Source of the DNA: Haliotis rubra | Taxonomy: Eukaryota | Reading direction: 5' to 3' | Length of the DNA: 64,000 nucleotides | NCBI RefSeq assembly: GCF_003918875.1 | Contig: NW_025767036.1 | Coordinates: 744,001-808,000 of the forward strand | Part shown: positions 1 to 51,178 of the stretch, piece after piece | How the letters are laid out: every line of letters starts with the position of its first letter | Numbering within the stretch: position 1 is the first letter of the stretch | Program-made: the position numbers and the translations under genes | Notes under the pieces: model-generated | What the model was told of the DNA's origin: nothing | Database searches by the model: none | The model's input: only the letters and a program-made list of their open reading frames with translations

Positions 1-1800
1 GATGATTTAATATGTGTTTACCACTGCAATTTCGACTAGGTAAGTCGATAATCCATGGTAATCTGTCAACACACTTGGGATACGATTCCATGCCAGTATG
101 ACAAGTATATCAAGGAAGGCGATAATCTATGCGAGAGCTCAATCCATCGACCAATGCTGCTTGTGAACATCCGTGTTCAGCAACCCATACCAAGAGGTGA
201 CTAACATCATCAGGCTCGCTGAATTTCTTTCATGCCTGTCAACGTAACACAATTGCTAAGACTGGTGCTGACGATGTCAATCACTGGATTGTCTGGACTA
301 GACTCGATTATTTACAGACCGCCGCCATATAGCTGGAATATTGCTGATTGTAACCTTAAACGAACACACATCGACCGACTGTTTTCTTATCAGCTTGTTA
401 TACAATCTCCAGGATAAATGTTTTAATGACTTTGTTTATTCACATAAAGAGCCACATTGCCCACCCAAACAAAAGTATCATCTGTCACTCGATATTTTAG
501 TGAAACATTATATGAGACAGTGATCTGTCGTTTGATTGGTCTGCACCTTCCTCAACATGAAATGTAATCACATAAAAAGATTTGTAAAAGCCAGCTAAGA
601 ATTTCCTCCCGACAGTCGGTGGCACTGTGACAACAAAGAAACTGTCGACTTGAAACTCACAGTCTAAACAAAGGTTGTACTTGTAAGTATTGTTAACTTT
701 CGCATTCACTCAGGCATGCCTTTCCTGAATCAATTCAGCGATTCCTACCACATATATTATCAACGATAAAAGTGAAATCGTGATGAATAGAGGTTTTCGG
801 TAAAGAATATCTCAATGTTTAAAAGTATTTAACATTTTCTTTAAACGTTGTTTGTATTGTATATTGTTTCCCGATATTGTGTATCTGACCATAGACTAAC
901 AACTAGTCTCTGAAATGAACATATTTTACAGAAAAAAGGCTCATAGTAAAACAAAATATCAAAATATAATAAAAAGGAGCCCTGAGACTTCCTAAAGCTG
1001 TCGAAATCTAGACTTGCCACATTTTCTAGACTTGCGTGGGATTTCTTGGATATATTTGATTCAGGGTCTGTGTGACAGACTAATCTGACCACATAAGCTG
1101 ACATCGTGCAATGCAAGAACAATATAAAATGTTAATTGTATTGTATGGTGCTCAAGGGAATATGATTAATATATGCAGCATATCTGTATAATCACGATGA
1201 ATAGGACATTTAATGTCATCAATGTATTAACATGGCATAACTGTATTCAGGAATGCAGGCATATTACCATGACTTATCTGTGTGGTCAGGAATGCAGGGA
1301 TAGTAACATGAAATATCTGTGTTATTTTGAATGCAGGGATAGTACCATAGCATATCTGTGTAATCAGGAATGCAGGGATAGTACCATAGCATATCTGTGT
1401 AATCAGGAATGCAGGGATAGTAAAATGACGTATCTGTGTTATTTGGAATGCAGGGATAGTACCATAGCATATCTGTGTAATCAGGAATGCAGGGATGTTA
1501 CCATGACATGTCTGATTGTTTGATGGGAATTCTAGAAGTTGGTGACTCAAAAATGATACACAGTATGTTAATCTGTTGTTGTCAAACATACTGTGTATTA
1601 TACCCCTCTACCTCTGGTTGTATTTACTTTTAGCTTGATAACGATGTAAGAATCTACATCGAAACGTCGCTCTATGCAATAAATAAGAAGATGTCATCCA
1701 TAAAGTTGTATGTTTCATTTATGACATATCTGTGCAATCAGGAATGCAAGGATATTACCATGACATATCTGTGTTATTAGGAATGCAGGGATAGCAACAT
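1..1800 (+). repeat. Segmental duplication: copy of the TLR-C upstream region (43737-43790, 44034-44770, 46307-47400)
   Basis: Near-identical colinear sequence: 55-750 vs 44034-44770 and 757-1760 vs 46309-47300. The second copy carries an extra Tc1 insertion and about 240 bp extra at 43791-44033. Confidence 0.95.
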
Positions 1801-2654
1801 GACATATCTGAGCAGTCAGGAATGCAGGCATATTATCATGACATATCTGTGCAATCAGGAATGCAGAAATAGTAACCTGTGTGATCAGGAATGCAGGGAT
1901 AGTAACATGACATATCTGTGTAATCAGGAATGCAGAAATAGTAACCTGTGTGATCAGAAAGGCAGAGACAGCAGCATCACATATCTGTGTAATCAGGAAT
2001 GCAGGGATATTACTATGACATATCTGTTTAATCAGGAATGCAGGGATATTACTGTGACATATCTGTGTAACCAGGAATGCAGGGATATTGCCATGACATA
2101 TTTGTGTAATCAGGAATGCAGAAATAGTAACCTGTGTGATCAGGAAGGCAGAGACAGCAGCATCACATATCTGTGTAATCAGGAATGCAGGGATATTACT
2201 ATGACATATCTGTATAATCAGGAATGCAGGAATATTACTGTGACATATCTGTGTAACCAGGAATGCAGGGATATTGCCATGACATATTTGTGTAATCAGG
2301 AATGCAGAAATAGTAACCTGTGTGATCAGGAAGGCAGAGACAGCAGCATCACATATCTGTGTAATCAGGAATGCAGGGATATTACTATGACATATCTGTA
2401 TAATCAGGAATGCAGGGATATTACTGTGACATATATGTGTAACCAGGAATGCAGGGATATTGCCATGACATATTTGTGTAATCAGGAATGCAGAAATAGT
2501 AACCTGTGTGATCAGGAAGGCAGAGACAGCAGCATCACATATCTGTGTAATCAGGAATGCAGGGATATTAATATGACATATCTGTATAATCAGGAATGCA
2601 GGGATATTAGCATGACATATATGTGTAATCAGGGATGCAGGGATAGTAACATGA
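1230..2654. repeat. 39-bp minisatellite in two arrays (1230-1510, 1720-2654) with a 186-bp higher-order repeat
   Basis: Unit approximately CATGACATATCTGTGTAATCAGGAATGCAGGGATATTAC. The variant GCAGAGACAGCAGCATCAC recurs at about 1962, 2148, 2334 and 2520 (period 186 = 4x39 + 30). Confidence 0.95.
1632..1671 (+). ncRNA. Minimal type I hammerhead ribozyme motif (Penelope-like retroelement type)
   Basis: AGC-TTGATAA-C-GATGTAA-GAAT-CTACATC-GAAAC-GTC-GCT. It shows stem I (AGC/GCT), a U3-A8 core variant, stem II, GAAA, palindromic stem III (ACGT) and a GUC cleavage triplet, followed by AATAAA. Confidence 0.65.
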
Positions 2655-2790
2655 CTGATTATTATGATGGAGCACATTCCAACCAACCAAATCCCAGAGG
2701 AAATATTGTATCATATACAATGGGATTCGTATTTGGAATATCCAGAAGGTGATGTTCTGGAGAAATCTTATTGGAAGTCTGAAAGAATAA
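2655..2790 (+). pseudogene. TLR remnant: last ~45 codons of the TIR domain of a TLR-A-like gene, with an 11-nt deletion
   Basis: Near-identical to 14757-14903 (LIIMMEHIPTNQIP.EILYHIQ.DSYLEYP...MFWRNLIGSLKE*). It lacks CTGGAAGGAGA and is joined directly to the minisatellite. Confidence 0.92.
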
Positions 2791-3411
2791 AGAACTTGAC
2801 ACGCCTTAGACTTGGACATGCATAGAACTTACTGAAACGTACCAGCATGTATCCCCGACAAGGTACATAAAATACAATGGAAAATGTTATATTTGGAGCA
2901 GCTGCAGCTGGTTGAAAAACGTGATCGAATGGTATTCGATTCCCGGAAATTGCAAGAGTATTCACTGCGTATTGACACGTACAAATATCGCACACAATTG
3001 TATTGTTGCGTCGTCAGCAGTGGTGACGTCATTCAAATCATATTGCGACGTAAAGTCGGAATGACGTCACAAATGAACAGATCCATATGCTACCATGGGA
3101 ACCAGCTGAAACTGCCAGCTGATGACACTTTACTGCTGTACCCGTACTCGATGTTAATGAGTGCAGACAGTAAAACTCATGTGGGCCTTTTGGTTTACTT
3201 TTGTGTTTACAATGTCGACAAACATCATGTGTTGGTCAATTTCCGGGTGTTATTAAGTATTTGGAACACGGGAATATTTCATTTCAAACCTTCGGCTAAC
3301 ACCGTCGGACCCAAATGAATTGCCGTGCTTCAAATACTCAATAACGCCCGGAAATTGGCCAACACATGATGTTTATCTCCTAATTGAATCGTTTAACGAG
3401 CTGTACCGTCA

Positions 3412-3612
3412 NNNNNNNNNNNNNNNNNNNNNNNNNNNNNNNNNNNNNNNNNNNNNNNNNNNNNNNNNNNNNNNNNNNNNNNNNNNNNNNNNNNNNNNNN
3501 NNNNNNNNNNNNNNNNNNNNNNNNNNNNNNNNNNNNNNNNNNNNNNNNNNNNNNNNNNNNNNNNNNNNNNNNNNNNNNNNNNNNNNNNNNNNNNNNNNNN
3601 NNNNNNNNNNNN
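3412..3612. other. Assembly gap (run of N)
   Basis: 201 consecutive N. Confidence 1.
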
Positions 3613-5609
3613 GACAGAATGTACCCATGTGGGGAATCGAACCCGGCTCATTTCAGTAACGAGAGTACACGTCAGCCAATAGGCTAGCTCACCGGGCCTA
3701 TTGTTTGAAAAGAACGTGTCATTGAAATAAAGTAACCCTTGTGATAAATTTATGGCTGTAGCTTGATCATTTATTGAAACTTGAAACTTGATTTCCTAGA
3801 TGTAGCTATAGAGATAGTGGTTTCAAACATAGTAGGTCATTGCCACACAAAGAATAAGGTGTATTTACCGTGCAAATGTTGTGGAAGTTACTTCAGGACA
3901 CAATTTTCCTTCATTTGGGTACATGCAACTATGAGAAAACTTCAAGGGGTCGGAAACTTCATTGTTTGTTTTCATGTCCTGAACAAAATCTGAAATGATA
4001 GGCATCAGTATGAGATAATGTCATATCTTGAAAGAGCGAGGAGTATTTTTATAACGGTGTGACAAAGCATGAAAAAGAATTGTTATCCATCAATCGTGTA
4101 ACTTATTCGTGGTCTTCAAAGTTCTAAATGCTTGTCAAATACTTTAAGAAGAATATAATTGGCCTTGCCCGACCAATGTTGTAACATGCGTAGCTTGTAC
4201 AGAGAGTGAGTGAGTGTGTTTTGTTTTACGCCGCACTCAGCAATATTCCATCTATATGGGGGTGGCCTGTAAATAATCGAGTCTGGACCAGACAATTCAG
4301 AGATTAACCAAGTAGCATTAATATTGATCCATATTAACATGATTGCACTCCGAGACGATGGGATAGCCTAGTGGTTAAAGCGTCCGCTCGTCACCCTGAA
4401 GACCCGGGTTCGATTCCCCAAATAGGTACAATGTGTGAATCCCATTCCTGATGTACCCCACAGTGATATAGCTGGAATATTGCTGAAAGCATTCTAAAAC
4501 CATATTCAGTCACTGAGTTGGGAATCGAACCCGAGTCTCCTGAGTGACGAGAGGGCGCTTCAACCAGTCATACATGTTAAATTTCCCTCGATAAGATTGG
4601 GGCAATTATATTTCCAAGTTTTAATTACCGGGCCTGTATGCCTATTAATTCCTGATCCATGAATATATCAGGAACACTTCCAGGTGTTTGAAGTTATTAA
4701 TGCACTCCGACCAGAGCAATTGTAATCTTTCAGTTCATCATCTCTGAAACGTATCTAGCCAAGGTCATGTCACATCCTGGTGTCAGAACAATGGTTTCCC
4801 TGTGGACTCCTGTGGTCTCAAGCAGGAAACAGATCAAATTGGCTCAAAAGATAAAGTCTGCTTTTTGTCTGATGCTACGAGGAAATTGCGACACACAAGC
4901 AGCCAAGTTAGAGAATTTGATCAATCGACACCATTTTTTAAACAATCAAGAAAGACAAAACATTAACGTTTACATGATTGTATCAGTGATGGGTCTTACA
5001 GCTCGTTTATCTATCATGCTGCAAATCGATTTCCCAATGAAGATTTGAGCAGCCTTGTTGGAATATCCACTTCTGTTGCAGTGTCTTCACCAGTGTCTTA
5101 GCGTGTGGTCATTGAGGCTCGTTTGATCATGGCCCTGAAGTGTTCTATTTTGGAAGGGGAAGGGTCAGAGCATATATCTTGCTGTTGCATTCTGGTAATG
5201 TTTTGCTGCTGAGACAGTGAGTTTCGGTACGAGCTCGGTTAGATCTTTTTAAAAGGCAAAGCATGGTCCAGAGCATCATTATTAGCTGACGTTAATACAG
5301 TTATTGGTTGTAGTCCAGGTAGTACTTTTAAATGACCCTTCCATGGACAATAGACAACAGTGTTCTGGTAGTACTATTGATCCCCAACCATATAACACAT
5401 CCACCACCAAATGTGCCATGTTGTCTTACAATTACATGAAATTCCTTTTGGCGCCTCAACAGACTATCCAGAGTGAACCTTCGGTTGGCAGGCACTCAAC
5501 ACCACTGGCTTGTTGATAGAATGTAGATCTGTGTTCATCACGTTTTAGATGATGGTTATTGAGAAAACAATATGTGAAATGTTGGACAGCCTCATGGATA
5601 ACATTCATG

Positions 5610-7144: not shown

Positions 7145-8655
7145 TACTACGCAAATAAAGAAACTGTGCATACAAAAATTTAAAATCTAAATTTATCAAA
7201 CCTGTGTAGACACATAAGGATTGAAACTCAGAGATTAGTGACATGTATCCAACATGCATGCACGTGCCACGTTCCGTGACGTCAGTGGGTTCGTCCTTGA
7301 GACGTGCAATACGTTGTTGCACGTGCATTCTGGGAAAGAGAAACAGAGCAAATGAATGCCACACAATCCTCTCACTTTGGAAAGCTCAACCCCTGCCCTT
7401 ACGATCGTTCAAAAAATTAAACGGCTATTGAAACGCATAGCATGCCAAGGCTCACGTCTGCACAACGTCATGAGGCCATTGGGATAGTCCGTGGGGGAAT
7501 GTCTCAACGACAAGTGGCTGCACATTTCCACTGCCACCGGAACACCATTTCTGCACTGGTGAGACGCTACCAGAACACAAATGACGTCATCGATCGGCCA
7601 CGTTCTGGACGTCCACGTGTAACAACGCCAAAACAGGACAGATGGATAAGGGTGACCCATCTTCGCCACAGGTTTCAGACTGCAGTGATGACGGCCCGAA
7701 CCATCCCAGCACTTCGCCGTATCCACCCCAACACAGTTCGACAACGTTTACGTCATCACGGGATCAGACCACGACGTCCCGCCATACGGCCTATCCTGAC
7801 ACAACGTCATCGACAAGCTCGCCGAATGTGGTGCCGAAATCATGTCCGCAGACCCTTGTTTTGGTGGAGAAATGTTGTTTTTACAGATGAGTCCAGGTTT
7901 AACATTTCCCATAGTGATGGACGTCAACGTGCCTTTAGACGCGTGGGAGAACGTTATGCACAGGCCTGTGTCTTGGAGAGGAATCGCTTTGGTGGTGGTT
8001 CTGTGATGATTTGGGGTGGAATAACAGCACGCCAGAAACTTCTTTGGTGATTGTTCAGGGCAACTTAACTGGTGTGGGATACAGGGATCAGATTCTTCGA
8101 CCTGTGGCAATTCCTTTTCTGCAACGTCATGGCCCTGGGTTAACATTCCAACAGGACAATGCCGGCCCTCATACGACAAGGGTTGCTATGGATTTATTGC
8201 AACACCACAACGTTGACTTACTGCCTTGGCCTACAAATTCACCGGATCTCTCCCCGCTAGAGCATGTTTGGGACGAGATGGATAGACGTCTACGCCGTCT
8301 TCCTCATCCGCCAGATAACGTCCTTGACCTTGCAACAGAACTCGAGAGAATCTGGCGTGTCATCCCACAAGCCTTCCTTGCGCTTTTGATAGGCTCTATG
8401 CGTCGTCGATGCACTGCTGTTCTCAATGCCGATGGTGGACATACCTGTTATTGAGCTTGTGACATGGTCGTTTGACCCCTGACCCGCTTGTGGACTCGTG
8501 ACGTCATTGTGATTGGCTTTTCAACTGAAATTCTCCCGACTTGTTATGGTCTCATGATCCCTCCATTAAAGTTTATATGTTCCTTTGACATTGTTATCGT
8601 ACTTATCAACTGGGATAATATTTTGACAATGCACAGTTTCTTTATGTGGCTAGTA
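7145..8655 (+). mobile_element. Tc1-family DNA transposon (DD34E), full length, frameshifted transposase 7442-8454
   Basis: TIRs TACTACGCAAATAAAGAAACTGTGCA / TGCACAGTTTCTTTATGTGGCTAGTA with TA flanks. Paired-like HTH, GRPR motif, FTDESRF, QQDNAGPH and DLSPLEHVW with 34-aa D-E spacing. One frameshift at about 8036. Confidence 0.95.
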
Positions 8656-12386: not shown

Positions 12387-14903
12387 ATGCTGCTGCTGGT
12401 ACACAATGCTGTGTGGATACAGATGCTTCTTGCCAGTGTTGTTGTGATTGATATGGTATTCAATCAACACCCATGTGCACCTTGCAAGTGTATGGTCAAT
12501 GGAACTGCGGACTGCAGGAATAAAGGCTTGGATATGATACCACGTTCCCTTCCAAATTATACCCAAGAGTTGCTATTCAGTGGAAACAAGCTGACGAAAC
12601 TCTGCAACGATTCCTTTGTACATCTAACTTTACTGATGCTTTTAGATTTGACAAATAACAGTGTAAACCTCATCGAAACGGCAGCATTTGATTCGTTGCC
12701 AAACCTACGGAATCTGTCTTTACAGGGAAATAACTTAACATACAAGGCTTTTTCCCCCTCATTATTTCAGAAGTTGCCAAACCTTAAAATCCTTATCATA
12801 AATAACAACACTGTCACAGATGACCCTACAGTGGAATACCCAAGTGATGCCTTAGCAAACCTGGTATCTCTTACCACTTTGTATATTGATGGTCTAAGGA
12901 ATAAAACATTTGGATTTGGGTTTTTTAAACTAAAATATCTAACTCATCTGGCAATCCAGAGTACAGGAAACAAGTGTGACATGACTGTGGTAACAGAGGA
13001 AACGTTTAAATACTTACCTTATCTTGAACATTTAAAGATTTTCAATTGTCATCTTCACTATATTGCAAAAGGATCTTTTGCTCATCAAGACAATCTCAAA
13101 ACTTTAGATCTGTCCTCTAATCATGATCTCACTTTCGAAGGTGTTACAAATGCTACGTATGGAATAGCTTCATCGCTTGAAGGGTTATTCATTAATGCAA
13201 TAGTAAGTCCATTTGCTGTTTGTGTTGTCATTGAAAGGCCGTTTTGTGAAAACCTTCAAAATACCAGCCTCACTGAACTGCATGCGAATAGAAACAGGGT
13301 GACAATCTTTCAAGAAGGCGCTCTGAGACTTTTCCCCAAATCACTGAAATACGTATATATGAAAGGGAGCAAATTTGAGTATGGTCCTTACATTGGAGAC
13401 CTTTCATCTTTGGTAGGTTTAGAAGTGATCAATATTAGAGGTTATGGCAATAGAAGACTGCCGTTTCCGTCATTGGATGATTTCAGACAAATGTTTTTTC
13501 TTTCTAAACGCCTTAGTTCTGTATACTTTGATGGTGACTATTCACCCCATCCTCCTTTTCTTATTCATCTACCCCCTAATCTACAGAAGGTAGATTTTTC
13601 GGTGTCACAATTGTTCTTTCATATCACAAGATTTCAAGTTTATAAGAACAACATTACTGAAATTGATGTTTCACGGAACCTGTTTACGAAGTGGATTGGC
13701 AATGGTATTGGATTTGAAAAACTTGAAACCTTAAATCTATCAGATAACATTGCGAAATTTGCCACTTCGCAATTTTTCGGGTCTTTCAAGAACCTTAAAC
13801 ATTTGAACATTTCCAAGAATCTTTTGGGAACTGTTCTGGGGAATATCTCTAATGGTAACATGTTCAGTGCCCTAAGCAAACTTCAAACGTTGGACCTATC
13901 AGCAAACTACATAAATAACTACTCATACGCTCTTTTCTCGAACCTATCATCACTGAGAGTGTTAAACATTTCTAAGAATACGATATATGCCTTACACTTT
14001 GATATAAGCCACATGAAGAACTTAAGTGTTTTACAGTGTTCCGGGAACCAAATACACTGGTTAACTAAAACGTTTACAACCAGTCTTGACAAACTCTCGG
14101 ATAATCACAATATAACGGTAGACCTTTCTGGAAACCCCATCTATTGCAATTGCAAAAACATTTGGTTTCTGTCATGGATGATAACAGCTAAAGCTAAAGG
14201 CACCATTTTCTTTGGAAATCTTTCAGATTATTTCTGCATTTATGATGATGAACGTTCCGTGGAACTTGATAACTTGGAAAAGGTTGTTGCAGATTTAACA
14301 TCCTGGTGTCAACATGTCTCTGTGCATTTTGGGTTGTTCGTTGGAATATCTTTAGTGGTCCTTGTTACTTTTAGTGTGCTTATTTGTTCTCTACTGTATC
14401 GATTTCGTTGGAAATTGAAATATGTTTATTATGCAGCACGTCACAGATACAGTACGACACACTCATTCAACCACACGTTCGTCTACGATGCCTTTGTTTC
14501 CTTCGCAGAAGAAGATCGTGACTTTGTTGTTAATGAGCTCCTGGTGAAGTTAGAGGAAGAATCAGACATGAGACTGAACTTCCATCAGCGGGACTTCACC
14601 GCTGGCCGCCCTATAGCTCACAATATCATTGAAGCTGTCAAAACTAGTAGAAGAACGCTGGTTATCTTGTCCAGTCATTTCTTAAAGAGCTCCTGGTGTG
14701 TCCACGAGCTTCAGATGGCTCACATGGAGAGTGTGTCTACTGGTAGGGACGTGTTGCTGATTATTATGATGGAGCACATTCCAACCAACCAAATCCCAGT
14801 GGAAATATTGTATCATATACAATCGGATTCCTATTTGGAATATCCACTGGAAGGAGAGAAGGTGATGTTCTGGAGAAATCTTATTGGAAGTCTGAAAGAA
14901 TAA
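12387..14903 (+). CDS. Toll-like receptor (TLR-A), 838 aa, single-cysteine-cluster type
   Basis: Hydrophobic signal peptide, LRRNT (CAPCKC...DCRNKGL), many LxxLxLxxN repeats, LRRCT (NPIYCNC...C...C), TM helix (FGLFVGISLVVLVTFSVLICSLLY) and TIR (YDAFVSF, RDFTAG, SSWCVHEL, FW). Splice acceptor TTTTAACGTAG ends at 12366. Confidence 0.97.
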   Translation: MLLLVHNAVWIQMLLASVVVIDMVFNQHPCAPCKCMVNGTADCRNKGLDMIPRSLPNYTQELLFSGNKLTKLCNDSFVHLTLLMLLDLTNNSVNLIETAAFDSLPNLRNLSLQGNNLTYKAFSPSLFQKLPNLKILIINNNTVTDDPTVEYPSDALANLVSLTTLYIDGLRNKTFGFGFFKLKYLTHLAIQSTGNKCDMTVVTEETFKYLPYLEHLKIFNCHLHYIAKGSFAHQDNLKTLDLSSNHDLTFEGVTNATYGIASSLEGLFINAIVSPFAVCVVIERPFCENLQNTSLTELHANRNRVTIFQEGALRLFPKSLKYVYMKGSKFEYGPYIGDLSSLVGLEVINIRGYGNRRLPFPSLDDFRQMFFLSKRLSSVYFDGDYSPHPPFLIHLPPNLQKVDFSVSQLFFHITRFQVYKNNITEIDVSRNLFTKWIGNGIGFEKLETLNLSDNIAKFATSQFFGSFKNLKHLNISKNLLGTVLGNISNGNMFSALSKLQTLDLSANYINNYSYALFSNLSSLRVLNISKNTIYALHFDISHMKNLSVLQCSGNQIHWLTKTFTTSLDKLSDNHNITVDLSGNPIYCNCKNIWFLSWMITAKAKGTIFFGNLSDYFCIYDDERSVELDNLEKVVADLTSWCQHVSVHFGLFVGISLVVLVTFSVLICSLLYRFRWKLKYVYYAARHRYSTTHSFNHTFVYDAFVSFAEEDRDFVVNELLVKLEEESDMRLNFHQRDFTAGRPIAHNIIEAVKTSRRTLVILSSHFLKSSWCVHELQMAHMESVSTGRDVLLIIMMEHIPTNQIPVEILYHIQSDSYLEYPLEGEKVMFWRNLIGSLKE

Positions 14904-17900
14904 ACAACCCGATGACATGCCTTAGACTTGGACATGCATAGAACTTACTGAAACGTACCAGCATGTATCCCCGACAAGGTACAAAAAATACAATGGAAAA
15001 TGTAATACTTTGAGCAGCTGCAAGATATTATGAAATGAATCGTTTAACCAGTTGTACCGTTACAGCTCAAGCACATCACCTAAATCAGCAAAGAGAGATT
15101 GATGTTGATTCAAATGTATCCACAGATGAACAGAATGAACACGATCAACGAATAAAAAGCAGATTTAAGATCTTTCATTCTCGATGCATTTATATCATAT
15201 AAGTTGCACTTCCCTCTGTTAACGTTTAGATCAAATTATTTCGAATTGCATGTATATTATAGCTTCATTTTGTGTTGCTTAAGTTGCTTAAGTTCTCATT
15301 GTAACTTCTTATGTGTACATCAATGTTGCATATATTGTACTTCTACATGTGCAATGGGCTGTAGATACTTGCAAGATTAAATGTTGCACTTGAACGACAT
15401 GATATTATTATATTTGGGACTCAAGAGGAAACACGGAAGTCGAACTGTTGGTGACACATGTTGTGTAGGCCATCATTATTTCAGTTATTTAGAATCTTTG
15501 AAAAACCCGAACTAAATAATAGCTGATGGTTTCTCTTACACCACTGACTAAGAATCATCCTCGTTGTCGTCGGCAATTATCTACTGGTGTTACAGGTGTC
15601 ATTTGAAAGGTGAGTGAGTGAGTTACTCCAACAATCTGGGAGACACCAGAACTAGGCTTGACAGAATGTACCCATGTGGGGAATCGAACCCGGGTCATTT
15701 GAGTGACGAGGGTACACGTCAACCAATAGGCTACCTTACGGTGCCTGTCATATGAATAGGTACGTGATAATATTGTGGAAGTTACTTCAGGAGCAATTTT
15801 CCTTCATGTGGGTACATGTAACTATGAGGAAAACTTCATGGAGTCGGAAACTTTATTGTTTCTTTTCGTGTCCTGAACTAACTCATGTCCTGATCATATC
15901 ACATCCTTGTTTCAGAGTATTTCCAGGTGATGTCACTGTCAACAGAATGCATTCATTCAGCATTGACCTGATGAAAGAGCAAGGAGTGCAATTTAACGTT
16001 GTGACAAAGCATGAAAGAAGTTGTTATCCATGATTCGTGTCATCTATTCATGATCTTCAAGGTTGTGAATGCTTGTCAAATACTTTAAGGTGAATATAAT
16101 TGGCCTTGCGCGACCAATGGTGTAACATGCGTAGCTTGCACAGAGAGATTACCCAAGTAACAGTATTACTGATCCATATCAACATGATTGCACACCGGGG
16201 TGGTGAGGTAGCCTAGTGGTTAAAGCGCCAGCTCGTCACCCTGAAGACCCGGGTTCGATTCCCCAAATAGGTACAATGTGTGAATCCCAGTCCTGGTGTC
16301 CCCCAGCGTGATATAACTGGAATATTTCTAAAGGCGGCATAGAACCATACTCACTCTCTGAGTTGGGAATCAAACCTGGGTCTTCTGAGTGACGAGAGGG
16401 CGCTTCAACCACTACGCTACCTCTCAGATGAACCCTAACACTAGTAGTCCAACAACATCTCATCTCCTCAAGAATAATCCTTGTCGCTACGAACGAACGG
16501 TTTAACTAATAGCCTACCCCTTGCCTTAAGAACAGTTCATATAGACAACAATATTATTGTATTTAATAAGTTTTAAATGTCACTTTCAAAGGGATGCATG
16601 TTGTATGTCAGTAGTATAATGTCATGCGTACAATAGGTGTGAAGATGAAAAGATGACAAATATGAATCCCATACTGAAACTAAATGAATAGTTTATACAT
16701 ATGAAGATGTTACTACCTTACATAAACCGCATACAAGACACTTTCTCACGAACGTATTCCAGTGCAAAGATAGTCATTTCATACATAAACCTATGCCAAT
16801 TATCACATGCATTAATTTCGAATTTCACATATATAATTCATGAAACGACCACAGTTGAGGATATTGGCGAGTTCTTGCTTTGTTTGCTTGTTGTTTATCG
16901 CCGAACTATAAAGCTATGATCGAGGCTGGACCAGACAATCCAGACATTTGTGATCCGATGACATGTGTCGACCAAGCCAGCGAGCCTGACCACCCGATCC
17001 CGTTAGTTGTCTCTTACGGCAAGCATGGGTTACTGCAGACGAATTCTAACCCGGACCTTCATGGGTATGTATTTTGTTATTAATATTTATGCACATGTAT
17101 GAATATCATCAATTATCTGTTATTTGTGACCATGCACATAATAAAATAAACGTTCACCAAGACAATGCAACTAAAAAAATAAAATCAATATGAGTTTATA
17201 TATTATCACGGACATGCATGTGTACATATGAAGAGGTGCTTTGAAATCTATGCAAACTTTAGGCAATGTGCAAAGGATGGTTTGGGTAGGGTGTGCTGGT
17301 ACAACGGTTCTATTATACCGTGCATGATGCACACAGCCGAGGTATGTGGTCTGTGAGCCTCCTAACAAACACGTATATTCCCAATGATAAAGGGTGGTAG
17401 GGTAGCCTAGTGCTTAAAGCGTTCAATTCCCAACGTGGGTACAATGAGTGAAGGTCATTTGGGGTGTCCCCCCGCCGTCATATTGCTGGAATATTGCATA
17501 AAGCGTCGTGAAACTAAACCCATTCACTCACTCAGTGATAAAGACAGGTTTTTTGTCGTGTTGTTACCTTAGGTTAACCAAGCCAAAACAGATACACATT
17601 CCGCGCTTTGATGAAATAGAGAAGTGTTATTGTAACTCCACAAATGTCACGTTGTCGCATTGCCGAATTTTGGTTTAGTTTGTCACTTCTGGTGACGTTT
17701 ATCAGGATTCCATACATTTCTGATTACATCCGTAACAGTTGATCACTGGATTGTCTGGTCCAGGCTGGATTATTTACAGACCGCCGTCGTACAGTTGGAA
17801 TATTACTGAGTGCAGCGTTAAACAACGAACAAACAAATATACATATGTAACGGGAAGATCAATTGTATTGCCACGGCAACAGAATATGTTTAGACATCAA

Positions 17901-31847: not shown

Positions 31848-34409
31848 TTAAGTCGTTTTGATCGAATGTGACAAAGTCGTCCAAAATAAGTCAGTCTGTC
31901 CATCATCCGGGTATTCTAGATACGTGTTATTGTGTAAATGGTAGAAGATTTCAGGTGGAATATCACATTTGGGGATATGTTTTATTACCAGGATCAACAG
32001 GATGTCTCTATCAGTTGTGACACTTTCCATGTTGGCCATCTGCAGCTCATATCTGCACCACGTGCTCTTCAAGAACTCTGGGGTCAGTACCAACACTGTC
32101 TTCCGACTTCTTTGTATAACGTCAATAATACTCTCGGCAATAGGTCTCCCTGGTAGGAAATCCCGACTATGAATATTCAAATGCAATCCTTTCTCTGTCT
32201 CCAAGGATGGAATTAATTCCTCAAAAACAAAAGTTCTGTCCTCCTCAGCAAAGGACACAAATGCGTCGTAATCATATTCAGGTTCATTGGTTTTATCTAC
32301 TTTGAACCGTAATCTGGTAGCAAAATACCAGTAAGAAAGCTTCCATCGATATCGATATGCTATAGCTGAAAGAATAACGACTAAGGTCATAAAGAAAAGG
32401 ACTAGAACAATACCCATTGTAAGACCAGTATGTTCGCTACACGTCTTGGACAATTTACGGACAATGTCAACTCGATGCATTTCTATATTCAGGGTGAAGC
32501 CTTCATAAGTGCAGTTACAACGGTCATAATTTTCAATTTTCACTGACGTTGTTCCAAGCCAATTAAGGAATGGGATAAGGTCACAGTTACAGGAAAATGG
32601 ATTCTGAGATACATCTATGGTGAAATTAGGATTTTTCGTGATTTTTTCGATTAAGGCTAAGTCCCTAGTATTTATTGTCCTCATTTCGTTTCTGCATAAA
32701 ATGAGCGTACTGAGCAGCCTAGTATGAGCGATACTAGATGGAAAATTCCCAATTCTATTCATAGACAGATCTAAAGTGCTTAATGAGCGGAGTCCCCTAA
32801 ACAACCGTTTGGGTACCTTCGAAATACTATTTTGGCTCATATTCAAGAATTTCAACCTGGTTAGATTCTGAAATATTTCTCCATCGTGATCATTTGCAAT
32901 ACTTGTTCCTAAATAATTTAAAGATAGATCTAGGTGCTTGAGTTGTGGCAGCTGTGAAAAGAAGTTGGTGGAGACAGATTTGGCAATGTTGTTCGATAGA
33001 GATAAATGAGTTAATTTATGGAGACCATATATGGGGCCCTGCCATATTGTGAGGACATTGCTTGACAGATTAATAATTTGTAAGTTATTTTCTCCAAAGT
33101 GGACCTCTGAAATACAGGCTGACAGTTCAGAATATGTGTACTCGAACTTTCTTAAATGGGGCGGGACAGGAAAGGGATGTTTATGACTGGTTCTAAAACG
33201 ATGCAGTCCTGAGGACAAGGTTTGGAGAAACTCATCCTCGTGATTATCAATACCGTCTGAAGTATTAGCACATTTTACCTGTATATTATTCATGTTGGGT
33301 ACACGAAGCTTATAATTCATGTGTATTGCCCGACGCGGCAAAAATGTCCCATAGGGAATTATGCGAGAGGAATCAGGTTTACCATTCAAAATCAACACTT
33401 CAAGGCCAAGGAGGTGTTGGAGGTCATATATGTAAGGGCCAGATGAAAATCGATTAAACAGAAGGTAAGCACGTTTTAGTGATGGCGGCAGCACCTCAAA
33501 CGTTTTCTCACTAAATCCGGAAAGACCGTTACCATTTGCATGTATTTCCAAAATTGATGTATTCTGCAGGTTCCTTATGTGCTTTGCTTGAATAATATTG
33601 CAGATCGTTCGGATATTCATTATCTCATTGACAAAAAGTTTTCGAATGGTTGTGTCCTTTAAGCCATACGTTATATTTTCAAGACCTCCTAGTTTCAATG
33701 CGCGATTCTTAGATATGTCCAGCATTGTTAGGTTCTTCAAGGGTGTCAGTGCATCCGCCTCTATTGTGGTTACGTTGCAAGAAGAAACATTGAGTTTTCG
33801 TAAATGGATTACATTCCTGAAAGTGTCCTTGATTAACCATTGAATGTTGCATCTACCAGATAACATCAGCGTATGGAGCTGTGAGAGATTCCAATATCCA
33901 GGGCCAAAGGATCTGTTTTGGAGTCCATCCATCTTTAACTGTTGCAGAGAACTAAGATCGCTCAATACTTCCTCAGCATAATCGGACAAGTTGTTGTAAT
34001 GAAGAGTTAGATTTTCTAGTTTTCTAAGGGGTTTGAATATCTTTGCGTAAGAATTTGAAAAGTTCAGAGCATTATCATGTAAGAAAAGCGTCAGTAGCTC
34101 CTGTGCTCCCTCAAAAGCTCCATCTTGAATTTCATGAATCTTATTATGCGACAAGTCCAAGAGTGTCAACATTCTGTACCGTTTGATTGAACCTGCAGGG
34201 AACACTTAGATTTTGTTTCGTCGGAGATAAAGTTCACAGGTGTCACTTGGAAGAGACTGGGGTATTGATGTATTATGCCTTTGAGAGCAGTCGAATGCAG
34301 GGCATCCCATTGTGGCATTTACCTTTTTGCATCCATCATCTTCGTGAATGTAATGCATCGTCACAGACGACATCGTCATGGTCAGTGTGAGTAACAGCAG
34401 CCCATCCAT
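31848..34409 (-). pseudogene. Toll-like receptor (TLR-B) with one premature stop (TAA at 34208-34206) in the first LRR
   Basis: ORFs 34206-34520 and 31848-34205 are the same frame: MDGLLLLTLTMTMSS...CKKVNATMGCPAFDCSQRHNTSIPQSLPSDTCELYLRRNKI*VFPAGS..LTLLDLSHNKI. These are followed by LRRs, LRRCT (NPFSCNC), TM and TIR (YDAFVSF, RDFLPG). Acceptor TTTGCAG lies 3 nt before the ATG. Confidence 0.9.
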
Positions 34410-43610: not shown

Positions 43611-44770
43611 GATAGGGGTGGTGAACTTCGAAACAGGCCATTTATAAGAAACATAAATTGCCTTGCTATCATAGTTAATTGATATAAGCTCACGATGACA
43701 CATACTTGAAAAAAGTTCACTAAAACAAAACACATTGATGATTTAATATGTGTTTACCACTTCCATTTCGATTAGGTAAGTCGATAATCCTTTCGTTAAT
43801 CCCTTACACAAATATTACTAAAACAACACCAAACATCAAAGACTACCGCCAGTCGCCTTAACTCGAATACCCGAAACGAAAATGTCGCCTTAGCGCGAAT
43901 ACCCCAATATGCCTCTGATTTTCAAACACAGTATTTTTCATTCCTAAATATACCTGCTCTGTCTGTATTTAAAAAAATCTTAATAGCACGGTTATGGTAC
44001 GCGTTCTGCTTTAGATAATCCAGTGATTGGCAACATGGTAATCTGTCAACACACTTGGGATACGATTCCATGCCAGTATGACAAGTATATCAAGGAAGGC
44101 GATAATCTATGCGAGAGCTTCAATCCATCGACCAATGCTACTTGTGAACCTCCGTGTTCAGCAACCTATACCAAGAGGTGACTAACATCATCAGGCTCGC
44201 TGAATTTCTTTCATGCCTGTCAAGGTAACACAATTGCATAGACTGGTGCTGACGATGTCAATCACTGGATTGTCTGGTCTAGACTCGATTATTTACAGAC
44301 CACCGCCATATAGCTGGAATATTACTGATTGTAACCTTAAACCAGGGAGACTCTATAAGGTAGAGTATCCCTGCTTAAACGAACACACATCGACCAACTG
44401 TTTTCTTATCAGCTTGTTATACAATCTCCACGACAAGTGTCTTAATGGCTTTGTTTATTCACATAAAGAGCCACGTTGCCCACCCAAACAAAAGTATGTC
44501 AATCGATAGTTTGAGGAAACATATTAAAAGACAGTGATCTGTCGTTTGATTGGTCTGCACCTTCCTCAACATGAAATGTAATCACATAAAAGGATTTGTA
44601 AAAGCCAGCTAAGAATTTCCTCCCGACAGTCGGTGGCACTGTGACAACAAAGAAACTGTCGACTTGAAACACACAGACTAACCAAAGGTTGTACTTGTAA
44701 GTATTGTTAACTTTCGCATTCACTCAGGCATTCCTTTCCTGAATCAATTCAGCAATTCCTGCCACATATA

Positions 44771-46306: not shown

Positions 46307-46779
46307 TATTATCAACGATAAAAGTGAAATCGTGATGAATAGAGGTTTACGGTAAAGAATATCTGAATGTTTGAAAGTATGAAAATTTTCTTTAGTTGCT
46401 TGTATTGTATATTGTTTCCGGATATTGTATATCTGACCATAGACTAACAACTAGTCTGTGAAAGGAACATATTTTACAGAAAAAAGGCTCATAGTTAAAA
46501 AAAAATCAAAATATCAAAAAAGGAGCCTGAGACTTCCTAAAGCTGTGGAAATCTAGACTTGCCACATTTTCTAGACTTGCGTGGGATTTCTTGGATATAT
46601 TTGATTCAGGGTCTGTGTGACAGACTTATAATCTGACCACATAAGCTGACATCGTGTAATGCAAGAACAATATAAAATGTTGATTGTATTGTATGGTGCT
46701 CAAGGGAATATGATTAATATATGCATCATATCTGTATAATCACGATGAATAGGACATTTAATGTCATCAATGTATGAAC

Positions 46780-47402
46780 ATGACATAACTGTATTTAGGA
46801 ATGCAGGCATATTACCATGACATATCTGTGTTATCAGGAATGCAGGGATAGTAACATGGAATATCTGTGTTATCAGGAATGCATGGTAGTAACATGGAAT
46901 ATATGTGTTATCAGGAATGCAGGGATAGTAACATGGAATATCTGTGCAATCAGGAATGCAGGGATAGTAACATGACATATCTGTGTTATTTGGAATGCAG
47001 GGATAGCACCATAACATCTGTGTAATTAGGAATCCATGGGTATTACCATGACATATCTGATTGTTTGATGGGCATTCTAGAAGTTGGTGACTCAAAAATG
47101 ATACACAGTATGTTAATCTGCTGTTGTCAAGCATACTGTGTATTATACCCTCTACATCTGGTTGTATTTACTTTTAGCTTGATAAAGATGTAGGAATCTA
47201 CACCGAAACGTCGCTCTATGCAATAAATAAGAAGTTGTCATCCATAAAGTTGTATGTTTCATTTATGACATATCTGTGCAATCAGGAATGCGGGGATATT
47301 ACCATGATATATTTGTGCAATCGGGAATGCAGGGATATCACCATGACATATCTGTGCAATCAGGGATGCAGGGATATCACCATGCAGGGATATCACATAT
47401 CT
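46780..47402. repeat. Second locus of the 39-bp minisatellite (46780-47060, 47265-47402)
   Basis: Same unit as 1230-2654. The second array has only about 3 units. Confidence 0.92.
47176..47215 (+). ncRNA. Minimal type I hammerhead ribozyme motif, second copy
   Basis: AGC-TTGATAA-A-GATGTAG-GAAT-CTACACC-GAAAC-GTC-GCT. Confidence 0.65.
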
Positions 47403-48715: not shown

Positions 48716-51178
48716 ATGGAACTGTGGACAAACATATTGGTGATACTGATTTCAAGATTAGCTTCCACGAGTTTGGAGTTTCTTGACTGCCGACCTTGCA
48801 AGTGTTCTGGTGGGAAAGGAAATGTCACAGCAGATTGTACAAACCGCAACTTGACGGAAATTCCTTCCTCGGTCCCACATGGGACGAGCGTGTTGCTGTT
48901 TGCTGGAAACCAATTGAAACTGAATAAGAACACGTTCGAAAACCTGACGTATCTTAAAACTTTAGATTTACGTAGAAATGGTTTAGCATATACAAATGAA
49001 AGTTTTCCATCGTCTGTGTTTCAAAATCTTATTAATCTGACCATTCTTAAAATCAATGTTAACAATGATGATTCTCCCAACCGTGTACTAAAGTACCCAA
49101 TTAATGCGTTAGAGAAGCTGCAATCTCTCGAATGGTTAAGTATTGACGGTCTGGAATGTCAGGCATTTGCCAGTGGGTTCTCCAAACTAAAACGTCTTAA
49201 AAGACTATCAATAAAGGGTAACCGTACTTCCTGTAACATTTGTTCTGTAAATAAGACTACATTCAAATACTTACCAATCCTTGATTACATTGACATAGTC
49301 AATTGCAACCTACGTGTCGTTGAACCGGGGACATTTGTTCACCAAAAGCTTCTTAAAACATTAGATATTTCAAAAAACCATTACCTGCGGTTTGACGGTG
49401 TCACGAATGCAACACAAGGGATATCTGAATCACTTGAGAAATTAATTATTAACGAGGTTGTCCCACCACATGCACTTTGTGTTGTAATTAAAGATCAATT
49501 TTGCAGAAATCTTCAAAACACTAAACTTGTTGAACTGCACGCGAAAAACAACCGCGTTAGTATTTTCAATGGTACCGCCCTGGAACTCCTACCAGACAGT
49601 CTTAAAAGGGTATATATGACTGGAAATAGGTTTAAGTATGGAATTTACATTGGTTCCATTGCATTTTTAAAAGGATTAGAAGAAGTCTACTTAGGTGGCC
49701 CATTTAGTTCGGAAATGCCATTTCCACACATTCCAGAGCTGTTACAAACATCAACCTATAACGACTGCAGTGATTGTGAAAATTTACACTTTGCATATAC
49801 GCCTGACAAACACTCTTCTTCTCCTCTTGCAATGCCCAATCATTATCCCGTTAAAATCAGTTTACCACCGAACCTCAAAACGGTGTCCTTTACTTCTTCC
49901 CAAATGTATTACCATATACAGAACGTTAGGGTGAGCAATAACAGCATCACAGAAATTGATGTTTCAAGGAATCTTTTAACGGAATGGAACGGCAACATTT
50001 CGGGACTTGAAAAGGTTGAAAAATTAAATATTTCAGGAAACATTGCACATAATGTCGGTGTGGGTTTCTTCCCATCGTTTAAGAAGCTAATAACCCTTGA
50101 TATTTCACATAACCAATTAGGAGGTGTGTTAACAAAGAGTGACATTTTCCACGGCTTGAGTACACTTCAGACTTTGAACCTTTCACATAACTTCATCACG
50201 AAATTGTCACCTAAAGTCTTTAGCGATCTGTCATCATTGACTGAGCTAAAACTGTCAAGGAATAGCATTCAAGAACTGCAGTTTAACATCGCTCATATGA
50301 AAAACCTCACAGTCCTAGAATGTTCAAAGAATCAAGTACAAAAGCTCAACCGCAGGTTTAGGGCGAACCTGGACGAAATCTCGAATGATCACGTAATTAA
50401 GGTGGATCTATCCCAAAACCCTATTCTCTGTACATGTTCTAACCTTCCTTTTCTATCCTGGATGAAAACATCCAGTATGAACGGTAGAATTTCATTTGGA
50501 CATCTTGAAAAGTATGAATGTCATTATGAATATGGTCACAGAGTAAACCTGCATAATCTTGAGGAAGTTGTAAGAGAATTGGAGATGTCTTGCTATTCCT
50601 ATTCCGGGTTCTTTATTGGTAGTTCACTAGTTTTATTTGTTTGTCTCTCTTTCTTAACGTGCTCACTGCTGTATAGATTTCGTTGGAAGTTGAGATATAT
50701 TTACTATGCAGCAAGACATAGATACAGTTCAGATGAGCCATCAAACCATGAATTCGTTTTCGATGCCTTTGTTTCCTTCGCAGAAGAAGATCGCGACTTT
50801 GTTGTTAATGAGCTTCTTGTGATGCTAGAGAACGAGTCACACATGAGACTGAACTTCCATCAGCGGGACTTCACCCCTGGTCGTCCTATAGCTCATAACG
50901 TCATCAAAGCTGTCAAAACTAGTAAAAGAACACTGGTTATCCTGTCCAGTCATTTCTTAAAGAGCTCCTGGTGTGTCCACGAGCTTCAGATGGCTCACAT
51001 GGAGAGTGTGTCTACTGGCAGGGACGTGCTGCTGATTATTATGATGGAACACATTCCAACCAACCAAATCCCAGTGGAAATATTGTATCATATACAGTCG
51101 GATTCCTACATTGAGTACCCACTGGAAGGGGAGAGGGACGTGTTCTGGAGGCGTCTCATTGCTTCCCTCAAGGAATAA
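48716..51178 (+). CDS. Toll-like receptor (TLR-C), 820 aa
   Basis: Start is most likely the ATG at 48716 (ACCATGG context; signal peptide MELWTNILVILISRLASTS). LRRNT CRPCKC..DCTNRNL, LRRs, LRRCT NPILCTC, TM and TIR with RDFTPG follow. Acceptor TTCTTTTCAG ends at 48634. Confidence 0.97.
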   Translation: MELWTNILVILISRLASTSLEFLDCRPCKCSGGKGNVTADCTNRNLTEIPSSVPHGTSVLLFAGNQLKLNKNTFENLTYLKTLDLRRNGLAYTNESFPSSVFQNLINLTILKINVNNDDSPNRVLKYPINALEKLQSLEWLSIDGLECQAFASGFSKLKRLKRLSIKGNRTSCNICSVNKTTFKYLPILDYIDIVNCNLRVVEPGTFVHQKLLKTLDISKNHYLRFDGVTNATQGISESLEKLIINEVVPPHALCVVIKDQFCRNLQNTKLVELHAKNNRVSIFNGTALELLPDSLKRVYMTGNRFKYGIYIGSIAFLKGLEEVYLGGPFSSEMPFPHIPELLQTSTYNDCSDCENLHFAYTPDKHSSSPLAMPNHYPVKISLPPNLKTVSFTSSQMYYHIQNVRVSNNSITEIDVSRNLLTEWNGNISGLEKVEKLNISGNIAHNVGVGFFPSFKKLITLDISHNQLGGVLTKSDIFHGLSTLQTLNLSHNFITKLSPKVFSDLSSLTELKLSRNSIQELQFNIAHMKNLTVLECSKNQVQKLNRRFRANLDEISNDHVIKVDLSQNPILCTCSNLPFLSWMKTSSMNGRISFGHLEKYECHYEYGHRVNLHNLEEVVRELEMSCYSYSGFFIGSSLVLFVCLSFLTCSLLYRFRWKLRYIYYAARHRYSSDEPSNHEFVFDAFVSFAEEDRDFVVNELLVMLENESHMRLNFHQRDFTPGRPIAHNVIKAVKTSKRTLVILSSHFLKSSWCVHELQMAHMESVSTGRDVLLIIMMEHIPTNQIPVEILYHIQSDSYIEYPLEGERDVFWRRLIASLKE

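Follow-up and report, generated by a model that had tools for sequence, protein, structure and literature searches.

The question raised by this locus is how two Toll-like receptor (TLR) genes with anciently diverged ectodomains can carry TIR domains that are closely similar in DNA, silent sites included. The window (the whole stretch of 64,000 nucleotides of DNA of Haliotis rubra, the blacklip abalone, that was analysed) carries three TLR genes and the relic of another, and we consider it highly probable that two of them, TLR-A and TLR-C, share a 377-nt TIR tract through gene conversion. The genes are the following.

12387–14903, plus strand: TLR-A, an intact single-exon Toll-like receptor ORF of 838 amino acids (AA), with an LRR ectodomain, a transmembrane segment (TM) and a TIR domain.
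31848–34370, minus strand: TLR-B, a distant TLR paralog that sits between TLR-A and TLR-C.
48716–51178, plus strand: TLR-C, an intact single-exon Toll-like receptor of 820 AA counted from the ATG at 48716.
2655–2906, plus strand: a relic A-type TIR tail, corresponding to TLR-A from 14757 onward.

TLR-A, TLR-B and TLR-C are all LRR–TM–TIR receptors, with Pfam LRR_8, LRR_4 and TIR matches above the gathering scores, and with a hydrophobic stretch before 'YRFRWKL' that corresponds to the transmembrane helix. In TLR-A the LRR_8 match is at 3e-33 and the TIR match at 1e-17 (AA 700–801); TLR-C has LRR_8 and TIR matches, the latter at AA 682–782, and its ORF as called mechanically begins at 48635, before the ATG at 48716 that was taken as the start. 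The NCBI label of the Haliotis orthologs, 'toll-like receptor 4', is an automatic name and no evidence of orthology with vertebrate TLR4. More than 60 TLR-like loci were matched in the H. rubra genome. TLR-A belongs to a tandem array of six A-type copies on contig C2146, the five others lying upstream of it (C2146:652–694 kb) with TIR identities of 96–98%, and TLR-C is the only C-type gene of the genome. The ectodomains of TLR-A and TLR-C are 50% identical in amino acids, and no copy in the genome falls between 36% and 50%. The two genes lie on the same strand 36.3 kb apart; in H. asinina A and C are also on the same strand, about 72 kb apart, and the C ortholog (P0001) is 80% identical to TLR-C. 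TLR-B is 35% identical to TLR-A (tblastn), has a near-identical twin of its own 60 kb upstream, and is interrupted close to the 5' end by an in-frame TAA ('RRNKI*VFPAG', where the twin L037 reads 'RRNKIEVFPAG').

The region of similarity between TLR-A and TLR-C is divided as follows.

14486–14862, plus strand: putative conversion tract in TLR-A, codons 701–825, the TIR from box 1 'DAFVSF' to 'PLEGEK'.
50761–51137, plus strand: putative conversion tract in TLR-C, collinear with 14486–14862 of TLR-A at an offset of 36275, with no indels.
14668–14833, plus strand: tract core, in which TLR-A and TLR-C differ at 4/166 nucleotides.
51138–51178, plus strand: gene-specific 3' end of the TLR-C coding sequence, 'DVFWRRLIASLKE' plus stop, common to H. 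asinina C and not to A.

Over the tract the two genes differ at 31 of 377 nucleotides (91.8% identity). The limits originally predicted for both stretches were off by 2–3 nt at most, and an identical run put at about 75 nt measures 76 nt (A 14668–14743, within the core). The description of these stretches as near-identical is apt for the core and slightly generous for the 5' half, where 20/182 nucleotides differ. The whole blastn match extends from A 14385 to 14913 at 85.8% and stops 10 nt past the stop codon; outside the tract a single further match was obtained, of 110 nt at 75%.

Four-taxon site patterns were scored among the A and C genes of H. rubra and H. asinina (HrubA, HrubC, HasiA, HasiC), informative sites being gene-type or species-type. 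Outside the tract there are 533 gene-type and 3 species-type sites, compared with 0 and 5 inside (Fisher p = 1.5e-10), where one further informative site is of another type. The regional counts of gene-type/species-type sites are 488/3 in the ectodomain, 18/0 in the TM, 14/0 in the juxtamembrane region, 0/5 in the tract and 13/0 in the 3' tail, that is, 520:3 upstream of the tract and 13:0 downstream. The last gene-type site on the 5' side is A 14485, the second position of the Y/F codon preceding DAFVSF, and the first on the 3' side is A 14863, 40 nt ahead of the stop, so that identity does climb at TIR box 1 and drop near the stop, as predicted. The 13 gene-type sites of the tail lie between A 14863 and 14897, and the tail differs at 14/35 positions between A and C vs 3/35 between HrubC and HasiC. 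The tract edges thus coincide with the TIR domain, and the tract has a history different from, and much shallower than, that of both flanks.

Silent divergence follows the same limits. By the Nei–Gojobori method, pS between TLR-A and TLR-C is saturated in the ectodomain (0.75, with pN 0.34), 0.67 in the TM and 0.59 in the juxtamembrane region, while in the TIR pS is 0.30, dS 0.39 and pN 0.06 (omega about 0.16). Tract pS ranges from about 0.23 to 0.30 over estimates, with a minimum of 0.13–0.16 in 40-codon windows, and the approximate synonymous counts of TIR and ectodomain differ with a Fisher p of about 2e-16; at third positions the paralogs differ at 162/271 sites of the ectodomain but at only 19/126 of the tract. 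Silent divergence along the genes gives the predicted picture of a low TIR and a saturated LRR region. TLR-B, taken over 31848–34205 of the minus strand, is indeed not homogenised: it differs from A and C at 152–155/377 tract nucleotides (about 40%), with a pS of 0.86–0.89. Among 719 TLR pairs of the genome with ectodomain pS > 0.6, the A–C pair has the lowest TIR pS (0.23), the median being 0.81 and the first percentile 0.52. A Sawyer-type permutation of concordant runs (a fragment test of the GENECONV type) gives a longest run of 9 of 1096 polymorphic sites, with p = 0.0003 for the whole gene and p = 0.08 when restricted to the tract. Chance is excluded as the source of the A–C tract similarity. 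Within the A family, third-position divergence is about 2-fold lower in the tract than in the ectodomain, the A–A2 comparison not being significant (p = 0.11).

Separate trees of the two regions are discordant. The ectodomain tree groups sequences by gene, with HrubC and HasiC together at 100/100 and 0.62 substitutions per site separating A from C. In the tract tree this grouping breaks and the A/C split collapses: HasiC joins HasiA at 92/91 and HrubC falls in a polytomy with HrubA. The expected clustering of TIRs within species appears in this tree for H. asinina, with a polytomy for H. rubra; the AU test of C-ortholog monophyly in the tract is borderline (p = 0.052), and whole-tract distances of paralogs (31 and 36 of 377) and orthologs (33 and 45) are about equal. 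The four tract sequences are about equidistant, and this star-like pattern means that homogenisation is not very recent, except in the H. rubra core. Together, the low TIR vs saturated ectodomain pS, the 0:5 vs 533:3 sites and the discordant trees support the gene conversion originally proposed between these paralogs 36 kb apart.

The five species-type sites, polarised by the A genes of H. cracherodii and H. rufescens, bear on the number of exchanges. Three of the five (14546, 14730, 14766) carry derived letters common to asinina A, A' and C, and one (14831) a derived letter common to rubra C and rubra A, A4 and A5. In the core, the 4/166 differences between HrubA and HrubC compare with 13/166 and 15/166 between orthologs (Fisher 0.04 and 0.016) and with the 20/182 of the 5' sub-tract (Fisher 0.002). 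At the asinina 3' edge paralogs differ at 2/29 positions vs 3–5/29 for orthologs. These patterns suggest more than one conversion event, and exchange probably ran both ways between A and C, because the C tract nests within A-type diversity and asinina A carries C-type letters at 14834–14862. The core would be the most recent H. rubra exchange, as judged from assembly sequence in which the C core is unconfirmed by short-read contigs. A donor for it was sought among the six A copies and none was singled out, all being almost identical there. No North Pacific C-type ortholog was part of the comparison, none from H. rufescens or H. cracherodii appearing among the protein matches, and the species compared do not polarise the oldest event as to its donor. 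Post-speciation conversion draws on the five sites, the 92/91 tree, the borderline AU test and the rubra core, in the two species with both genes.

The alternative that survives best is a single old conversion, or a chimeric duplication, shortly before the H. rubra/H. asinina split, with no later exchange, the species-type sites being homoplasy and the rubra core an effect of chance or assembly. The rough equidistance of the four tract sequences (31–45/377), the AU value and the unconfirmed C core speak for it. We nevertheless regard it as unlikely: 5 species-type sites stand against no gene-type and one other (Poisson about 0.004, an estimate, if 'other' gauges homoplasy), three derived letters recur in each of the asinina genes A, A' and C, whose assembly is independent, HasiC groups with HasiA, and asinina A carries C-type letters.

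The H. rubra assembly is a hybrid one, and reads of the A-type copies, which outnumber C 6:1, might have overwritten the true TLR-C TIR. This was checked in public short-read contigs (Logan), the stretch being present in none of the RNA runs. Contig depth rises 7–19 fold inside the tract, where the interior contigs are shared multi-copy unitigs that break within it, and the C-private core letters 51019, 51029 and 51049 are absent from the contigs examined, 51049 from all four runs. Against such an artefact, TLR-C retains 31 tract differences from TLR-A, of which 20 fall in the 5' half and many are private, and single-copy C-specific contigs cross the tract edges from both sides (50300–50790 and 51079–51500), entering the tract by 30 nt (X1, X4) up to 100 nt (X9) and leaving it over 59 nt. 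A-type juxtamembrane sequence appears as an alternative contig branch at 50753, in three organisms. Moreover, the independent chromosome-level assembly of H. asinina shows the pattern confined to this tract and bounded at the same sites, which counters assembly collapse, named beforehand as a possible refutation, for the overall pattern. An artefact is thus very improbable as a general explanation and would threaten at most the recent core event.

Unequal crossing-over within the TIR, giving a hybrid gene with the other gene's 3' end, appears slightly less probable still. It finds a precedent in the chimeric relic, which matches A 14757–15022 at 91% (blastn) and has on its upstream side a minisatellite and then a copy of TLR-C upstream DNA, while its flank at 3613–4566 matches the 3' flank of TLR-A; positions 54–1840 of the window match 44034–44770 and 46307–47384 at 90–92%. 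In this structure upstream DNA of C type is followed by a TIR tail and 3' flank of A type, a sign of rearrangement or ectopic recombination between units of the two types, and such rearrangements therefore do occur at the locus. A single crossover would, however, carry the entire 3' end, whereas 13 gene-type sites follow 14862, A/C similarity does not run on through the 3' UTR into the downstream flank, and both the last 40 nt of the coding sequence and the 3' UTR are specific to each gene, with their orthologs in the corresponding H. asinina gene. The TIR swapping mentioned in the original prediction as an equivalent of conversion is thus disfavoured if it means a crossover; because the last 40 nt of the coding sequence are gene-specific, the tract is internal, which points to conversion.

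Conservation of TIR DNA, silent sites included, through strong constraint (for instance from codon usage, mRNA structure or an overlapping element), with no exchange at all, is the least credible reading: low TIR dN and a TIR GC3 above that of the ectodomain would fit it, but orthologs diverge equally at third positions in the tract (22/126 and 26/126, 17–21%) and in the ectodomain (47/277 and 53/279, 17–19%), for which reason synonymous constraint is rejected and silent sites of the tract are under no extra constraint, the TIR of A or C is at pS 0.86–0.89 from that of TLR-B, other TLR pairs of equal ectodomain divergence show TIR pS of 0.52–0.95, and gene-specific silent differences abound on either side of the tract, in the adjoining juxtamembrane region and 3' tail. 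GC3 is 0.49–0.56 in the tract vs 0.37, and is also raised in unconverted TLR-B (0.46), so that comparing tract and TLR-B gives no clear signature of GC-biased conversion.

The escape of TLR-B is better explained by its great divergence than by its orientation. It belongs to another TLR lineage, differs by 40% of TIR nucleotides and has a near-identical twin of its own, and orientation is needless as a cause.

We propose that interlocus gene conversion acted as follows. TLR-A and TLR-C would be old tandem paralogs whose ectodomains split long before the Haliotis radiation. The internal 377-nt TIR segment would have passed non-reciprocally by ectopic conversion, a break in one gene being repaired without crossover with the linked paralog as template. 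A first event, near or before the rubra/asinina split, may have covered the whole tract and been followed by shorter events in each lineage, the later one in H. rubra corresponding to the core at 14668–14833. Confinement to the TIR could result from purifying selection (omega about 0.16), which would keep only this domain similar enough for heteroduplex formation, every conversion in turn renewing the similarity; the edges may be sharpened by selection against hybrid ectodomains or tails.

In consequence two different sensor domains, or seven with the A array, are coupled to almost identical signalling domains. The original functional interpretation, in which variable sensors would act through a common signalling module, is a reasonable one, and for abalone aquaculture immunogenetics it makes the A-type and C-type receptors probable inputs to a single signalling interface. 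It is possible, although we hold it as a tentative idea and rather doubtful, that A and C are no isolated case and that TIR-restricted concerted evolution recurs, perhaps under selection, across the expanded TLR repertoire of molluscs. Other clusters have TIR silent divergence 3–4 fold below that of the ectodomain (C2189, C2155, and L031 on C2624 compared with C2189 genes). An A–C exchange that is present in two abalone species, two-way and exact to the domain at its boundaries is also cited for recurrence. If this were true, conversion would be a general device by which many diverging sensors retain a single signalling module, co-adapted to shared adaptors (MyD88, for example), in an invertebrate with innate immunity alone. 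The TIR is commonly used for molluscan TLR phylogenies since it aligns best; TIR-based trees can accordingly misplace paralogs and understate their age, and short-read or hybrid assemblies of such clusters are error-prone precisely within the converted tract.

Gene conversion between mammalian TLR1 and TLR6 has been described (Kruithof et al., 2007, PMC2077338; Huang et al., 2011, PMC3125219). As in abalone, these are tandem paralogs on the same chromosome, tens of kb apart, in which N-terminal ligand-binding LRRs group by ortholog and a C-terminal segment with most of the TIR is homogenised, with conserved boundaries and a gene-specific extreme C-terminus. Mammalian events are independent in different species, of which the abalone counterpart is suggested by two species. 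The abalone tract differs in being 377 nt long vs about 900 nt, in covering the TIR only, without the last LRRs, LRRCT and TM, and in its identity of about 92% overall and 97.6% in the core vs more than 96% protein identity throughout; its genes are molluscan TLRs with no relation to the TLR1 family, and an array of six copies makes up one of the partners. Avian TLR1A/TLR1B and TLR2A/TLR2B also undergo gene conversion (PMC6107061; schematic in PMC8788240, Fig. 1A), with diverged ectodomains and converted C-terminal regions including the TIR, regions also known to confuse short-read assembly. Those genes are from vertebrates and another TLR family and have larger near-identical tracts, whereas the abalone tract is older and partly decayed, with a younger core. 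Molluscan TLR repertoires are expanded by lineage-specific, tandemly duplicated and mostly intronless genes (Saco et al., 2023, PMC10279657), and the abalone genes fall within such expansions; TIR-limited conversion is not described in that survey. The present case extends the mechanism of the vertebrate TLR1 family to an unrelated, lineage-specific molluscan expansion, which suggests that vertebrate and molluscan TLRs converged on the same evolutionary solution. In conclusion, the abalone locus is a molluscan instance of the kind of conversion known in mammalian TLR1/TLR6 and avian TLRs, real and not unprecedented.

The window (C2146:744001-808000 in the 1.38-Gb genome of Haliotis rubra) contains three intronless TLR genes, all with LRR and TIR Pfam matches:

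12387-14903, + strand: TLR-A, ORF of 838 aa
31848-34205, - strand: TLR-B, ORF; similarity extends to 34370
48716-51178, + strand: TLR-C, 820 aa counted from the ATG

TLR-A is the last of six copies of an A-type array, the other five lying at C2146:652-694 kb; these copies show 90-94% DNA identity over the genes with their flanks, and several of them are no longer intact. TLR-C is a singleton in the genome. Within the array, the 3' two-thirds of A6 (L011, C2146:654500-660000, a broken copy in which an insertion lies at A position 13123) and of the intact copy A2 (L012, C2146:667700-673700) differ at 4 of ~1775 nt, compared with 4-10% for other A copies, a similarity that points to a very recent duplication or conversion inside the array. 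TLR-B carries an in-frame TAA at 34206-34208 (minus strand), 55 codons into the frame (RRNKI*VFPAG). The corresponding codon of its near-identical twin L037 (C2146:715091-716995) encodes Glu. The TAA may mark TLR-B as a pseudogene or may be an assembly error. The window also holds a 540-aa TRIM-like ORF downstream of TLR-C (58440-60062, + strand; with B-box zinc fingers and, weakly matched, an NHL repeat) and a Tc3-like transposase HTH fragment at 7442-8050.

The original prediction held that the TIR-coding segments of TLR-A and TLR-C are near-identical, synonymous sites included, and this is what we observe. The two segments are collinear and indel-free at a constant offset of 36275, and differ at 31 of 377 nt (A 14486-14862 / C 50761-51137); the identical run predicted at about 75 nt is 76 nt long (A 14668-14743). 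By the Nei-Gojobori method, A-C divergence is saturated in the ectodomain (pS 0.75, pN 0.34) and remains high in the TM (pS 0.67) and juxtamembrane (pS 0.59) regions; in the TIR, pS is 0.30 and pN 0.06 (p about 1e-16 against chance), with pS down to 0.13 in 40-codon sliding windows. TLR-B had been described as not homogenised, in agreement with its TIR pS of 0.86-0.89 against A and C. The tract spans A codons 701-825, from TIR box 1 (DAFVSF) to PLEGEK, a span that corresponds almost exactly to the TIR domain.

We regard comparison with orthologs as the decisive test of the history of this tract. In H. asinina, the orthologs of A (P0122, 82% amino acid identity between the two species) and C (P0001, 80%) share a chromosome and a strand and are about 72 kb apart. 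Informative sites were classed in a codon alignment of the four genes, with A-type genes of H. cracherodii and H. rufescens as outgroups, according to whether they group sequences by gene (gene-type) or by species (species-type).

Informative sites by region
Ectodomain: 488 gene-type, 3 species-type
TM: 18 gene-type, 0 species-type
Juxtamembrane: 14 gene-type, 0 species-type
Tract, A 14486-14862: 0 gene-type, 5 species-type, plus one third-pattern site
Last 40 nt of the CDS: 13 gene-type, 0 species-type

The counts differ sharply between the tract and the rest (Fisher p = 1.5e-10). The nearest gene-type sites are A 14485 and A 14863, which places the predicted limits, 14487-14860, within 3 bases of the actual ones. 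The sole third-pattern ('crossed') site of the tract, 14601 / 50876, where rubra A equals asinina C, encodes a BB-loop residue; this loop reads RDFTAG (Ala) in the H. rubra A-type copies, TPG in rubra C, KPG in asinina A and TVG in asinina C.

These patterns support the interpretation of the A-C tract as an internal gene conversion tract. Constraint on silent sites would also preserve similarity, but third positions of orthologs diverge equally in the tract (A-A 22/126, C-C 26/126) and in the ectodomain (47/277 and 53/279). Tract silent sites therefore evolve at a normal rate, and constraint cannot account for the drop in third-position differences between paralogs from 162/271 in the ectodomain to 19/126 in the tract. 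The original prediction had left open gene conversion or TIR swapping. Site patterns and trees favour the former, while a swap by single crossover is excluded because the tract is internal: beyond it, A and C each have their own CDS 3' tail and 3' UTR, and they share the tail with their H. asinina counterparts (14/35 differences for A-C vs 3/35 between the C orthologs). An assembly artefact is rejected because many C-private letters survive in the 5' half of the C tract and because the boundaries are identical in the independent H. asinina assembly. Among short-read Logan contigs of public runs, single-copy C-specific ones reach into the tract at its 5' edge (50300-50790) and at its 3' edge (51079-51500), with a depth of about 131 in X1, and a 2.3-kb contig from a third coded organism extends from the C ectodomain 100 nt into the tract. 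These contigs bear on the edges of the C tract. An alternative contig branch at 50753 carries A-type juxtamembrane sequence. Contig depth is 7-19 fold higher inside the tract, as expected for sequence common to seven or eight copies. None of the public RNA runs compared contained this sequence.

Conversion probably occurred in several events of different ages and in both directions. The four tract sequences are about equidistant (rubra A-C 31/377, asinina A-C 36/377, A-A 33/377, C-C 45/377), with North Pacific A genes outside this group (37-54/377). Separate trees differ: the ectodomain tree groups by gene, with a deep A/C split of 0.62 substitutions per site and C orthologs united at 100/100; the split is collapsed in the tract tree, asinina C joining asinina A (92/91) and rubra C lying in a polytomy with rubra A. 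An AU test gives a borderline result for monophyly of the C orthologs (p = 0.052). From this near-equidistance and collapsed split, the main homogenisation would be about as old as the rubra/asinina split. Later, shorter conversion events are indicated by several observations. Derived letters are common to all three asinina genes at three of the five species-type sites (14546, 14730, 14766), and to rubra C and rubra A, A4 and A5 (the latter two further A-type copies) at 14831. In the rubra core (14668-14833), paralogs differ at 4/166 sites vs 13-15/166 for orthologs (Fisher 0.04, 0.016) and vs 20/182 in the 5' sub-tract (p = 0.002). At 14834-14862, asinina A genes have C-type letters (asinina A-C 2/29, rubra A-C 7/29). 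Finally, a fragment-based test of the GENECONV type, by Sawyer-type permutation over the whole gene, gives p = 0.0003. We give less weight to the rubra core, which depends on the H. rubra assembly: its C-private letters 51019, 51029 and 51049 were seen in none of the short-read contigs compared, and 51049 was absent from four of four runs. The letters at 14834-14862 point to transfer from C to A, and the nesting of the C tract as a whole within A-type diversity points to transfer from A to C.

With 40 further TLR genes of the genome, ectodomain and TIR pS were compared over 741 pairs. Ectodomain pS exceeds 0.6 in 719 of these; the TIR pS of A-C (0.23) is the lowest among them (median 0.81, 1st percentile 0.52), and pairs matched for ectodomain divergence (pN 0.31-0.40) range from 0.52 to 0.95. 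A-C stands clearly apart in pairing long-separated ectodomains with a TIR of shallow divergence. The next lowest values (0.33-0.37, ectodomain pS > 0.6) identify, at the sequence level, a second such case, between L031 (C2624:462000-465800) and, on a different contig, L028, L047 and L049 of the C2189 cluster (5.19-5.29 Mb). In the younger clusters C2189 and C2155, pS is 3-4 times lower for the TIR than for the ectodomain (p about 1e-3), and other young TLR pairs show the reverse; in such TLR clusters, patchy conversion appears to be common.

Mechanistically, the best-supported reading is non-allelic gene conversion, the two paralogs being linked and on the same strand. With an omega of about 0.16, purifying selection on the TIR would keep this segment alone close enough in sequence for pairing, and every round of conversion would renew that closeness; the other parts of the gene (ectodomain, TM, juxtamembrane region, tail) are presumably too diverged for pairing. 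Such homology dependence is the simplest explanation for the restriction to the TIR; selection for a common signalling interface, as argued for TLR1/TLR6, may be an added factor. GC3 is 0.49-0.56 in the tract and 0.37 in the ectodomain, but it is also raised in the unconverted TLR-B TIR (0.46), so that a signature of biased conversion is not established. The 5' end of the window carries a relic composed of:

54-756 and 755-1840: copies of TLR-C upstream DNA (44034-44770 and 46307-47384, 90-92%)
to about 2654: minisatellite
from 2655: A-type TIR tail, matching A 14757-15022 at 91%
3412-3612: N gap
3613-4566: A-type 3' flank

The relic is evidence that A and C units of this cluster have recombined in other ways too, and the composition of 54-4566 suggests an A/C recombinant gene, later deleted.

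A limited literature search found no account of TLR gene conversion in Haliotis, molluscs or invertebrates, an absence that is not proof, and a large molluscan TLR survey does not mention conversion or recombination (PMC10279657). The abalone case, which bears in practice on TIR-based phylogenies and on the assembly of molluscan TLR clusters, adds a molluscan instance to an already known mechanism. In mammals, conversion homogenises the C-terminal part of the tandem paralogs TLR1 and TLR6, including most of the TIR, in independent events per species with conserved boundaries, leaving the N-terminal LRRs orthologous and the extreme C-terminus gene-specific (PMC2077338; PMC3125219); birds show conversion of the same kind between TLR1A and TLR1B and between TLR2A and TLR2B (PMC6107061; PMC8788240). 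The mode of operation is the same in abalone A/C, but the tract is much shorter, confined to the TIR and less fully homogenised, the TLR lineage is an unrelated, molluscan one, and one of the partners is a multi-copy array.
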